Assembly: GCF_000143415.4 (NCBI RefSeq)
Contig: NW_003314741.1
Coordinates: 1 to 5,242 of the forward strand
Source of the DNA: Selaginella moellendorffii
Lineage: Eukaryota > Plantae > Lycopodiophyta
Direction of reading: 5' to 3'
DNA length: 5,242 bases
Under the pieces are notes generated by a model, which saw only the letters and a list, made by a program, of their open reading frames with translations, was not told where the DNA came from and did no database searches. The position numbers were made by a program, and so were the translations under genes. Shown here piece after piece: positions 1 through 5,242 of the stretch. Each line of letters begins with the position of its first letter. Position 1 is the stretch's first letter.

Positions 1-10
1 CCACCTCTCC
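1..10 (-). ncRNA. First 10 nt of a further copy of the small RNA, truncated by the window edge
   Basis: CCACCTCTCC is the reverse complement of the 5' end GGAGAGGTGG and equals 1250-1259, implying the array continues leftward. Confidence 0.55.
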
Positions 11-217
11 GTTACATATTTCGTGTCGGTTAAATTTATTGGGTTTGTGGGGGAGGGGGTTTAACTAGCAAAGGGCGATTATGGGGAGCGCTTAGTGCGA
101 TTAAGTGGGGCTTAAGTTGGGGCAATCGCGGCCGTCGGTGCGGTGGGGTGGTTGACCGGCGGCGATGAGTTTGACCGGCGGTCCCCGTGACACGTGGCTA
201 GGGCTAGGGTCTGGATA

Positions 218-511
218 TGGGTTTTGCGCGAGTGGGCAAGATCCATGGCTCGGTTTGCGGTGGGACTTGAACCGTTGGAAAGCTTGCGTGAGTCCACCCG
301 TTTCCACAGAAACGGATCTGGATTTCGTCGCTCCACCGGCCCGCACCATTGCGATGGGTTTGACGCTGGGTTTTCGAGCGAGTGGGCAACATCCATGGCT
401 CGGTTTGCGGTGGGACTTGAACCGTTGGAAAGCTTGCGTGAGTCCACCCGTTTCCACAGAAACGGATCCCGATTTCGTTGCTCCACCGTCCCACACCATT
501 GCAATGGGTTT
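218..511. repeat. Internal 150-bp-period direct duplication in the spacer (copy A ~218-361, copy B ~367-511)
   Basis: 228-361 aligns to 378-511 with 7 mismatches in 134 bp, and 241-318 is identical to 391-468. Two copies in units 1, 3 and 4, one in unit 2, truncated in unit 5. Confidence 0.97.
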
Positions 512-560
512 TGTGCTGTTCCCGTTGCCATATCTCGTGGACCGTGGGCCCCCTTTCGCC

Positions 561-615
561 CTTGGGCACATGGGAGCAACTGGGGCGGTGCGCGCAACTG
601 GCCCATGTGGCCAAG
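561..615. repeat. 14-bp inverted repeat (13/14 match) enclosing two GCAACTGG direct repeats
   Basis: CTTGGGCACATGGG (561-574) and CCCATGTGGCCAAG (602-615), with GCAACTGG at 576-583 and 594-601. Present in every full unit. Confidence 0.85.
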
Positions 616-1159
616 TACATTTTTCCATGTCCTGGGCGCCTGCTTTTGTGGTTTTTCCCACGGAAGAAGATGCGTCCCACGTGGCGATCCGTGTGCCCGC
701 CCGCACTCCGGCACCAACGGGGCCGGCCGGCGTGACGCCCCGGTCGCGGCCGTGCCAACGGATCGCGGGCCCCATGCGTGGGCTGCCGCCGGGAGTGCAT
801 CTCACTCTCGAGGAAAACACCGCACTGGCGCTCGGGCCTGCACTGGAACGCGACCCCAGGAGCGCCGTGGCGAAGCCCGCGTCGAGGGCATCGATCCGAA
901 TTGGCTGGGCCCCCCATGCCATGCTGGCACCGTGCGTGCCTTGTCGAAAACGGCACACCCTTGCGACCGCTGGGCGAAAGGGGCAAACCCCGAGAGGTCC
1001 TTGCACCTCCTGTCACTGGGGAGGGTGCCCCCCACGAACACGAACCCAACGGCGCCAGTCCCACGCGAAACGCACGCACGGTTCGCGAGAAAACGGCCCC
1101 CAACGCCCGCATTCTCCATTATTCCGAGAGAATATTCCCTCCACTACTTAAATTGTGCC

Positions 1160-1164
1160 AAAAA
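1160..1164 (-). terminator. Pol III oligo-dT terminator, T5 (also 2264-2268, 3513-3517, 4762-4766)
   Basis: AAAAA on + is TTTTT on -, directly at the 3' end of the terminal stem and the first T4+ run after the inferred start. Confidence 0.7.
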
Positions 1165-1180
1165 GAGGTGGCTCCGGGTG

Positions 1181-1190
1181 GGTCTCGACC
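1181..1190 (-). promoter_or_regulatory. Pol III internal promoter, B-box-like (also 2285-2294, 3534-3543, 4783-4792)
   Basis: GGTCGAGACC versus GTTCGANNCC (T>G at position 2), 45 nt downstream of the A-box end, a normal A-B spacing. Confidence 0.65.
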
Positions 1191-1235
1191 CAGGGACCTA
1201 TTTGAGTGGACTTGTTTTTAGATTGGGGGTCTCTG

Positions 1236-1246
1236 CCACTAGGCCT
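1236..1246 (-). promoter_or_regulatory. Pol III internal promoter, A-box-like (also 2340-2350, 3589-3599, 4838-4848)
   Basis: AGGCCTAGTGG versus consensus TRGCNNAGYGG (1 mismatch), at +14..+24 from the inferred start. Confidence 0.7.
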
Positions 1247-1278
1247 CTACCACCTCTCCGTTACATATTTCGTGTCGG

Positions 1279-1289
1279 TTAAATTTATT
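1279..1289 (-). promoter_or_regulatory. TATA-like AT-rich upstream element at -30..-20 (also 30-40, 2383-2393, 3632-3642, 4881-4891)
   Basis: AATAAATTTAA on the minus strand, 11 consecutive A/T in a GC-rich unit, at the position where TFIIIB/TBP binds Pol III genes. Confidence 0.6.
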
Positions 1290-2263
1290 GGGTTTGTGGG
1301 GGAGGGGGTTTAACTAGCAAAGGGCGATTATGGGGAGCGCTTAGTGCGATTAAGTGGGGCTTAAGTTGGGGCAATCGCGGCCGTCGGTGCGGTGGGGTGG
1401 TTGACCGGCGGCGATGAGTTTGACCGGCGGTCCCCGTGACACGTGGCTAGGGCTAGGGTCTGGATATGGGTTTTGCGCGAGTGGGCAAGATCACATCCAT
1501 GGCTCGGTTTGCGGTGGGACTTGAACCGTTGGAAAGCTTGCGTGAGTCCACCCGTTTCCACAGAAACGGATCCCGATTTCGTTGCTCCACCGTCCCACAC
1601 CATTGCAATGGGTTTTGTGCTGTTCCCGTTGCCATATCTCGTGGACCGTGGGCCCCCTTTCGCCCTTGGGCACATGGGAGCAACTGGGGCGGTGCGCGCA
1701 ACTGGCCCATGTGGCCAAGTACATTTTTCCATGTCCTGGGCGCCTGCTTTTGTGGTTTTTCCCACGGAAGAAGATGCGTCCCACGTGGCGATCCGTGTGC
1801 CCGCCCGCACTCCGGCACCAACGGGGCCGGCCGGCGTGACGCCCCGGTCGCGGCCGTGCCAACGGATCGCGGGCCCCATGCGTGGGCTGCCGCCGGGAGT
1901 GCATCTCACTCTCGAGGAAAACACCGCACTGGCGCTCGGGCCTGCACTGGAACGCGACCCCAGGAGCGCCGTGGCGAAGCCCGCGTCGAGGGCATCGATC
2001 CGAATTGGCTGGGCCCCCCATGCCATGCTGGCACCGTGCGTGCCTTGTCGAAAACGGCACACCCTTGCGACCGCTGGGCGAAAGGGGCAAACCCCGAGAG
2101 GTCCTTGCACCTCCTGTCACTGGGGAGGGTGCCCCCCACGAACACGAACCCAACGGCGCCAGTCCCACGCGAAACGCACGCACGGTTCGCGAGAAAACGG
2201 CCCCCAACGCCCGCATTCTCCATTATTCCGAGAGAATATTCCCTCCACTACTTAAATTGTGCC

Positions 2264-2363
2264 AAAAAGAGGTGGCTCCGGGTGGGTCTCGACCCAGGGA
2301 CCTATTTGAGTGGACTTGTTTTTAGATTGGGGGTCTCTGCCACTAGGCCTCTACCACCTCTCC
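2264..2363 (-). ncRNA. Putative Pol III small ncRNA, vault-RNA-like; copy 2
   Basis: Identical to 1160-1259 (offset 1104). Confidence 0.75.
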
Positions 2364-3512
2364 GTTACATATTTCGTGTCGGTTAAATTTATTGGGTTTG
2401 TGGGGGAGGGGGTTTAACTAGCAAAGGGCGATTATGGGGAGCGCTTAGTGCGATTAAGTGGGGCTTAAGTTGGGGCAATCGCGGCCGTCGGTGCGGTGGG
2501 GTGGTTGACCGGCGGCGATGAGTTTGACCGGCGGTCCCCGTGACACGTGGCTAGGGCTAGGGTCTGGATATGGGTTTTGCGCGAGTGGGCAAGATCCATG
2601 GCTCGGTTTGCGGTGGGACTTGAACCGTTGGAAAGCTTGCGTGAGTCCACCCGTTTCCACAGAAACGGATCTGGATTTCGTCGCTCCACCGGCCCGCACC
2701 ATTGCGATGGGTTTGACGCTGGGTTTTCGAGCGAGTGGGCAACATCCATGGCTCGGTTTGCGGTGGGACTTGAACCGTTGGAAAGCTTGCGTGAGTCCAC
2801 CCGTTTCCACAGAAACGGATCCCGATTTCGTTGCTCCACCGTCCCACACCATTGCAATGGGTTTTGTGCTGTTCCCGTTGCCATATCTCGTGGACCGTGG
2901 GCCCCCTTTCGCCCTTGGGCACATGGGAGCAACTGGGGCGGTGCGCGCAACTGGCCCATGTGGCCAAGTACATTTTTCCATGTCCTGGGCGCCTGCTTTT
3001 GTGGTTTTTCCCACGGAAGAAGATGCGTCCCACGTGGCGATCCGTGTGCCCGCCCGCACTCCGGCACCAACGGGGCCGGCCGGCGTGACGCCCCGGTCGC
3101 GGCCGTGCCAACGGATCGCGGGCCCCATGCGTGGGCTGCCGCCGGGAGTGCATCTCACTCTCGAGGAAAACACCGCACTGGCGCTCGGGCCTGGACTGGA
3201 ACGCGACCCCAGGAGCGCCGTGGCGAAGCCCGCGTCGAGGGCATCGATCCGAATTGGCTGGGCCCCCCATGCCATGCTGGCACCGTGCGTGCCTTGTCGA
3301 AAACGGCACACCCTTGCGACCGCTGGGCGAAAGGGGCAAACCCCGAGAGGTCCTTGCACCTCCTGTCACTGGGGAGGGTGCCCCCCACGAACACGAACCC
3401 AACGGCGCCAGTCCCACGCGAAACGCACGCACGGTTCGCGAGAAAACGGCCCCCAACGCCCGCATTCTCCATTATTCCGAGAGAATATTCCCTCCACTAC
3501 TTAAATTGTGCC

Positions 3513-3612
3513 AAAAAGAGGTGGCTCCGGGTGGGTCTCGACCCAGGGACCTATTTGAGTGGACTTGTTTTTAGATTGGGGGTCTCTGCCACTAGGCCTC
3601 TACCACCTCTCC
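3513..3612 (-). ncRNA. Putative Pol III small ncRNA, vault-RNA-like; copy 3
   Basis: Identical to 1160-1259 (offset 2353). Confidence 0.75.
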
Positions 3613-4761
3613 GTTACATATTTCGTGTCGGTTAAATTTATTGGGTTTGTGGGGGAGGGGGTTTAACTAGCAAAGGGCGATTATGGGGAGCGCTTAGTGC
3701 GATTAAGTGGGGCTTAAGTTGGGGCAATCGCGGCCGTCGGTGCGGTGGGGTGGTTGACCGGCGGCGATGAGTTTGACCGGCGGTCCCCGTGACACGTGGC
3801 TAGGGCTAGGGTCTGGATATGGGTTTTGCGCGAGTGGGCAAGATCCATGGCTCGGTTTGCGGTGGGACTTGAACCGTTGGAAAGCTTGCGTGAGTCCACC
3901 CGTTTCCACAGAAACGGATCTGGATTTCGTCGCTCCACCGGCCCGCACCATTGCGATGGGTTTGACGCTGGGTTTTCGAGCGAGTGGGCAACATCCATGG
4001 CTCGGTTTGCGGTGGGACTTGAACCGTTGGAAAGCTTGCGTGAGTCCACCCGTTTCCACAGAAACGGATCCCGATTTCGTTGCTCCACCGTCCCACACCA
4101 TTGCAATGGGTTTTGTGCTGTTCCCGTTGCCATATCTCGTGGACCGTGGGCCCCCTTTCGCCCTTGGGCACATGGGAGCAACTGGGGCGGTGCGCGCAAC
4201 TGGCCCATGTGGCCAAGTACATTTTTCCATGTCCTGGGCGCCTGCTTTTGTGGTTTTTCCCACGGAAGAAGATGCGTCCCACGTGGCGATCCGTGTGCCC
4301 GCCCGCACTCCGGCACCAACGGGGCCGGCCGGCGTGACGCCCCGGTCGCGGCCGTGCCAACGGATCGCGGGCCCCATGCGTGGGCTGCCGCCGGGAGTGC
4401 ATCTCACTCTCGAGGAAAACACCGCACTGGCGCTCGGGCCTGCACTGGAACGCGACCCCAGGAGCGCCGTGGCGAAGCCCGCGTCGAGGGCATCGATCCG
4501 AATTGGCTGGGCCCCCCATGCCATGCTGGCACCGTGCGTGCCTTGTCGAAAACGGCACACCCTTGCGACCGCTGGGCGAAAGGGGCAAACCCCGAGAGGT
4601 CCTGGCACCTCCTGTCACTGGGGAGGGTGCCCCCCACGAACACGAACCCAACGGCGCCAGTCCCACGCGAAACGCACGCACGGTTCGCGAGAAAACGGCC
4701 CCCAACGCCCGCATTCTCCATTATTCCGAGAGAATATTCCCTCCACTACTTAAATTGTGCC

Positions 4762-4861
4762 AAAAAGAGGTGGCTCCGGGTGGGTCTCGACCCAGGGACC
4801 TATTTGAGTGGACTTGTTTTTAGATTGGGGGTCTCTGCCACTAGGCCTCTACCACCTCTCC
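4762..4861 (-). ncRNA. Putative Pol III small ncRNA, vault-RNA-like; copy 4
   Basis: Identical to 1160-1259 (offset 3602). Confidence 0.75.
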
Positions 4862-5242
4862 GTTACATATTTCGTGTCGGTTAAATTTATTGGGTTTGTG
4901 GGGGAGGGGGTTTAACTAGCAAAGGGCGATTATGGGGAGCGCTTAGTGCGATTAAGTGGGGCTTAAGTTGGGGCAATCGCGGCCGTCGGTGCGGTGGGGT
5001 GGTTGACCGGCGGCGATGAGTTTGACCGGCGGTCCCCGTGACACGTGGCTAGGGCTAGGGTCTGGATATGGGTTTTGCGCGAGTGGGCAAGATCCATGGC
5101 TCGGTTTGCGGTGGGACTTGAACCGTTGGAAAGCTTGCGTGAGTCCACCCGTTTCCACAGAAACGGATCTGGATTTCGTCGCTCCACCGGCCCGCACCAT
5201 TGCGATGGGTTTGGCGCTGGGTTATCGAGCGAGTGGGCAACA

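Follow-up and report, generated by a model that had tools for sequence, protein, structure and literature searches.

Units of a tandem satellite in Selaginella moellendorffii each carry a putative, probably tRNA-derived RNA polymerase III cassette

Array architecture and the repeated cassette

A stretch of the Selaginella moellendorffii genome (NCBI RefSeq assembly GCF_000143415.4, contig NW_003314741.1, positions 1 to 5,242), referred to below in its whole length of 5,242 nt as the window, consists of long tandem repeats, each including one 100-nt segment with signals typical of genes that RNA polymerase III (Pol III) transcribes. The window comprises 4.2 head-to-tail units with start-to-start spacings of 1249, 1104, 1249 and 1249 bp (Tandem Repeats Finder and repeat finder), and its head-to-tail order and high identity are those of a satellite-type tandem repeat. 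The 100-nt segment, hereafter the cassette, occurs in four exact and identical copies, one per unit and all on the minus strand (exact string search). A first-pass annotation of the same DNA had described four identical full copies and the 5' end of a fifth, one per unit and on a common strand, which agrees with the string search. It had also described the array as a homogenised one of 1.25 kb; the period of 1249 bp and the near-identity of the units bear this out, but unit 2, which is only 1104 bp long, had gone unmentioned. The units and cassette copies are as follows.

1..1249: repeat unit 1, 1249 bp (repeat finding and unit alignment)
1250..2353: repeat unit 2, 1104 bp long, in which two 150-bp subrepeats are fused by a 145-bp deletion, with the junction at about 1490-1497 (unit alignment)
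2354..3602: repeat unit 3, 1249 bp long, with a private substitution at 3194 (unit alignment)
3603..4851: repeat unit 4, 1249 bp long, with a private substitution at 4604 (unit alignment)
4852..5242: partial unit 5, 391 bp long, with private substitutions at 5214 and 5224 (unit alignment)
1160..1259, minus strand: Pol III-type cassette, copy 1, with a T5 run counted in its 100 nt (string search and cassette scan)
2264..2363, minus strand: Pol III-type cassette, copy 2 (string search)
3513..3612, minus strand: Pol III-type cassette, copy 3 (string search)
4762..4861, minus strand: Pol III-type cassette, copy 4 (string search)
1..10, minus strand: first 10 nt (5' end) of a fifth cassette, truncated where the window begins; equal to the last 10 bases of the plus-strand segment

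The cassette scan used a generic consensus for transfer RNA (tRNA) genes, not the observed sequence, and required box A and box B each at no fewer than 8 of 9 specified positions (>=8/9), a spacing of 30-70 nt between them, a T4 run at most 45 nt downstream and no internal T4 run. Each unit has this combination of box A, box B and terminator exactly once, on its minus strand and not on the plus strand, whereas 11 of 20,000 first-order Markov simulations of the 1249-bp unit contained it; the Pol III signals are therefore non-random, being either working or inherited. The order of the boxes, their spacing, the downstream T-run and the lack of an internal T-run are those of a type-2 Pol III unit; in particular, the minus strand of the cassette contains no internal T4 run. 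The signals, with coordinates for copy 1, are as follows.

1236..1246, minus strand: box A-like motif AGGCCTAGTGG, RNA nt 14-24, 8/9 specified consensus positions
1181..1191, minus strand: box B-like motif GGGTCGAGACC, RNA nt 69-79, 8/9 specified consensus positions
1160..1164, minus strand: T5 terminator run, RNA nt 96-100
1279..1289, minus strand: TATA-like AT run AATAAATTTAA, -30 to -20 upstream of the cassette (read directly)
1249..1258, minus strand: 5' arm of a terminal stem, nt 2-11, pairing with 1163-1172 (nt 88-97; minimum-energy fold and pair probabilities)

The 5' and 3' ends of the cassette are predicted to form a stem of 10-11 bp with pair probabilities of 0.93-1.0. The fold of the whole cassette is ordinary, with z of -1.5 to -1.8 relative to dinucleotide shuffles, and about 10% of 100-nt spacer windows, tiled on both strands, fold as stably as the cassette.

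Base composition also sets the cassette apart from the spacer. Together with its flanks, the cassette forms an AT-richer and CpG-poorer island with a GC content of about 0.49-0.52, against 0.57-0.75 in the spacer; the observed/expected ratio of CpG is 0.97 over the unit and 0.26 in the 125-bp bin which contains the cassette (bin GC 0.50). AT-rich surroundings are usual at plant Pol III genes.

Only five differences between units were found in the unit alignment, namely the 145-bp deletion of unit 2 and the single-base changes at 3194, 4604, 5214 and 5224, each of which is private to one unit. Full-length units thus differ pairwise by 1-2 bases per 1249 (about 0.1%), and no unit of the window is interrupted by an insertion. 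All five differences lie in the spacer and none in the cassette. By chance, five events would all fall outside a 100-nt target in a unit of 1249 bp with a probability of 0.66, and the spacer-only pattern is therefore uninformative on selection, as the first-pass annotation had itself cautioned in judging such differences too few. The changes at 5214 and 5224 are only 10 bp apart, in partial unit 5 near the end of the window; this pair may be a short conversion tract derived from a variant unit, or a sequence error near the contig end.

Each full-length unit also includes an internal duplication, identified by repeat finding.

218..517: two 150-bp internal subrepeats with 91-93% mutual identity; equivalent pairs at 2571-2870 and 3820-4119

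Tandem Repeats Finder reports no two-copy 150-bp array in unit 2. The subrepeats within a unit diverge by 7-9%, compared with about 0.1% between whole units; it is therefore the entire unit that is copied or homogenised, and the duplication inside it long predates the current uniformity of the units. Near-identity of units is compatible alike with long-term concerted evolution and with a recent amplification burst, which the window alone cannot separate. The deletion in unit 2 fuses subrepeats A and B with a 5-bp shift in register, and so looks like a product of end-joining or slippage rather than of in-register unequal crossover.

The 150-bp subrepeats were considered as decayed copies of the cassette, an idea not supported by the best local alignment (E = 1.4). 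Within each subrepeat lies a perfect hairpin of 7 bp (CCGTTTC and GAAACGG around a 4-nt loop; 296-313 and 446-463), and on the minus strand a 5-bp stem with a 7-nt loop would imitate an anticodon loop. A tRNA at these hairpins is supported by neither ARAGORN nor Rfam.

Three extra B-box-like motifs are present per unit on the strand of the cassette (minus), and none on the other strand.

263-273 and 413-423, minus strand: B-box-like GGTTCAAGTCC, one per 150-bp subrepeat; recurs, for example, at 2616-2626 and 2766-2776
887-897, minus strand: B-box-like GGATCGATGCC; recurs, for example, at 3240-3250

At least three such motifs on one strand are seen in 0.2% of simulated units (mean 0.28); this enrichment was noticed post hoc, two of the three motifs are one duplicated copy, and the 8/9 threshold is loose. 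Near the extra motifs there is neither a box A nor a T-run.

Identity of the cassette and searches for relatives

Known RNA families do not account for the cassette. At gathering thresholds Rfam gives no match in the whole window, and permissive searches (E up to 10) of 1401-nt and 151-nt stretches at the cassette give no tRNA, Vault, 5S, Y or 7SL, returning only noise, namely hits to a trypanosomatid small nucleolar RNA model and to a microRNA model. With default settings ARAGORN finds no tRNA in the window; with relaxed settings, both with and without introns, it finds nothing on the cassette strand and makes only weak calls on the opposite strand. A tRNA gene is accordingly rejected, as the cloverleaf is recognised by neither ARAGORN nor the Rfam tRNA model, and so is a 5S ribosomal RNA (rRNA) gene, for which the Rfam 5S model has no match.

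By eye, the cassette comprises a D-loop-like box A, a stretch like a variable loop and T-arm, an acceptor-like terminal stem and about 20 extra nt, with no cloverleaf. This resemblance of motifs suggests that the cassette is probably tRNA-derived, from a tRNA gene or from a tRNA-derived element. At least one other repeat of S. moellendorffii, the terminal-repeat retrotransposon in miniature (TRIM) Helenus-1_SMo, has a tRNA-derived Pol III promoter (PMC10886601). A solo long terminal repeat (LTR) of Helenus-1_SMo was considered and rejected, as there is no TG..CA pair with duplication and the cassette differs from the published LTR by eye, in a comparison made with no computed alignment; the generic motif of variable loop and T-arm is all that the two have in common by eye.

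Around the cassette, a 7-nt direct repeat, AATTTAA (minus strand; 1148-1154 and 1279-1285), bounds a 124-nt segment containing it. AATTTAA may be the trace of an old insertion, but a flanking repeat of this type occurs likewise in 7.8% of shuffled flanks. As for hallmarks of short interspersed nuclear elements (SINEs) and solo LTRs, the surroundings of the cassette lack both a poly(A) tail and a TG..CA pair with duplication.

Searches beyond the window, in collections without plant genomes, yielded no relative of either the cassette or the spacer. The DNA pattern of box A, gap and box B gave one match in metagenome contigs (L001), in a bacterial contig with genes of respiratory-complex type by reading of the sequence; with 24 specified bases in the pattern, the match is put down to chance. 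The same pattern had 0 matches in prokaryote genome contigs and viral contigs, which include no plant genomes, and this result is hence uninformative. The papers searched contain no match to three 15-16-nt strings of the cassette, and nothing relevant was found there on a described Selaginella satellite.

The spacer does not appear to be coding. Its open reading frames (ORFs) have no Pfam match, and a coding spacer is rejected on this ground and on the GC content, which is flat over the three codon positions with no coding-like bias. In collections without plant genomes, protein word-index searches with the spacer ORFs and exact look-ups of ten of them gave no match. Runs of the telomere repeats TTTAGGG or TTAGGG are absent from the window.

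Possible origins and roles of the array

The account which we hold to have somewhat better than an even chance is that the cassette is an orphan, probably of tRNA derivation, carried as a transcription-competent passenger in a satellite and having no dedicated RNA function. Each satellite unit would bear one type-2 Pol III unit on the minus strand, with box A at +14, box B at +69, the T5 run at +96 and the TATA-like element at -30 to -20. If transcribed, this would yield an RNA of about 96-100 nt whose ends are paired in a stem of 10-11 bp and which has a U tail. An ancestral tRNA gene or tRNA-derived element would have lost its cloverleaf and would now ride in the repeat as an orphan. The uniformity of the units could have arisen via whole-unit unequal crossing-over and gene conversion, or via recent amplification; we infer the tRNA descent, the competence for transcription and the mode of homogenisation, whereas the array, its identical copies and the non-random promoter and terminator signals are shown.

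Several points weigh against this account. The descent from a tRNA is supported at the level of motifs only, and the Rfam tRNA model and ARAGORN are negative on the minus strand. In addition, the observed/expected ratio of CpG in the spacer is about 1, which is unexpected for an old, heavily methylated and inert satellite; GC-biased gene conversion or absent methylation could explain the undecayed CpG.

The first-pass annotation had gone further in proposing a high-dosage locus of non-coding RNA. The presence of one Pol III unit per repeat, rare as such a combination is in the simulations, upholds part of that proposal, but no Rfam family matches, the fold is ordinary, and neither a gene nor its dosage is supported. 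In its full form, the proposal would make the array a genuine family of high-dosage genes for a functional Pol III small RNA of a new kind, a panhandle of about 100 nt kept uniform by concerted evolution in the manner of 5S ribosomal DNA (rDNA). That the promoter, the terminator and the terminal stem are intact in every copy, with one copy per unit and a common strand, is consistent with such a family, and the AT-rich and CpG-poor island in a GC-rich and CpG-rich spacer could reflect constraint. However, the cassette matches no known family, its stability is equalled by about one in ten spacer windows, and its unchanged state among the units is expected by chance (P = 0.66). A functional gene family is considered unlikely, and a dedicated function of the cassette RNA in general is given less than an even chance. 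As a DNA element rather than a template, the cassette might act through repeated TFIIIC-binding B boxes, serving as chromatin boundary or organising sites, or as a safe landing site for site-specific retrotransposons. TFIIIC sites are established as boundaries in yeasts, which provides a precedent, and the three further B-box-like motifs per unit, confined to the cassette strand and matched in few simulations, point the same way. The provisos on that enrichment, its post hoc nature, the duplicated motif and the loose threshold, count against a DNA-level role, as does the lack of any interrupted unit in the window, and such a role is regarded as distinctly improbable.

Two further explanations concern what the array is rather than what it does. 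Near-perfect identity of units is also expected from a collapsed or duplicated assembly, in which a low-copy locus would have been over-expanded into an apparent array; the private variants and the 145-bp deletion argue for distinct physical copies, and an assembly artefact is considered highly improbable. An array of vault RNA genes would explain the length of about 100 nt, the internal box A and box B, the latter with the core GTCGAGACCC, the terminal panhandle and the T-run, but these common features are generic to tRNA-style Pol III genes, the Rfam Vault model finds nothing in the 151-nt search even at E up to 10, and vault particles are reported to have probably been lost from plants (PMC3762200); this identification is given virtually no credence.

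A bolder proposal, which is quite unlikely, is that the cassette encodes a lycophyte-specific panhandle RNA of about 100 nt, made abundantly by Pol III, vault- or Y-like in layout and unrelated in sequence, borne in long and partly chromosome-end arrays which would be sufficiently ancient to have drawn site-specific retrotransposons of their own. Arrays of rDNA, small nuclear RNA genes and spliced-leader genes have attracted such elements. If the RNA is made and used, the array would represent a new system of multicopy small RNAs in a plant of an early vascular lineage, concealed in annotated satellite DNA, and a plant counterpart of the arrays which host site-specific retrotransposons. If the cassette is a passenger only, the array would be a clean case of a satellite that keeps an intact tRNA-style Pol III unit, with a bearing on the prediction of tRNA and small-RNA genes and on the spread of Pol III and TFIIIC sites in plant genomes. 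On present evidence the repeat is of ordinary to moderate interest, and we agree with the first-pass annotation that it would be annotated as an anonymous satellite.

Comparison with known Pol III genes and repeats

The nearest known counterparts of the array are plant tandem tRNA-gene clusters, 5S rDNA arrays and tRNA- or SINE-derived satellites. Its layout matches that of 5S rDNA and of plant tandem tRNA clusters; the first-pass annotation had called such an organisation typical of 5S rRNA, small nuclear RNA and spliced-leader RNA genes under concerted evolution. In 5S rDNA arrays, too, each unit has a single small Pol III gene, the genes lie on the same strand and the spacer evolves in concert. 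The 5S gene differs in its type-1 internal promoter, and the cassette has no Rfam 5S match. 5S rRNA is conserved across all life; unlike this universal RNA, the cassette RNA has no known relative.

To our knowledge, vault RNA genes do not form homogenised 1.25-kb arrays. Vault RNA (Rfam RF00006) is similar to the predicted cassette RNA in that it has A and B boxes, is about 100 nt long, pairs its 5' and 3' ends and carries a U tail, but the vault covariance model fails on the cassette.

Satellites derived from SINEs exist in scaled reptiles (PMC10702118). Like such tRNA- or SINE-derived satellites and like Helenus-1_SMo, the present array is a repeat with a tRNA-like Pol III promoter and no working tRNA. 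It differs from both in that it shows no target-site duplication clearly above chance, no primer-binding site and no LTR layout, and in that the cassette takes up only 8% of a long unit instead of forming the repeat unit by itself.

Tandem arrays of tRNA-type genes are known in plants, as in the Ser-Tyr-Tyr and Pro clusters of Arabidopsis and the Ile and Ala arrays of maize, and these clusters are often silent in standard conditions (PMC13437025). They consist of genuine tRNAs, whereas the cassette has no detectable cloverleaf, a predicted product of about 96-100 nt and a GC-rich spacer. Both the plant tRNA clusters and the present array are built on a kilobase scale from type-2 Pol III units arranged head-to-tail, with uniform flanks and poly(T) terminators (PMC13437025).

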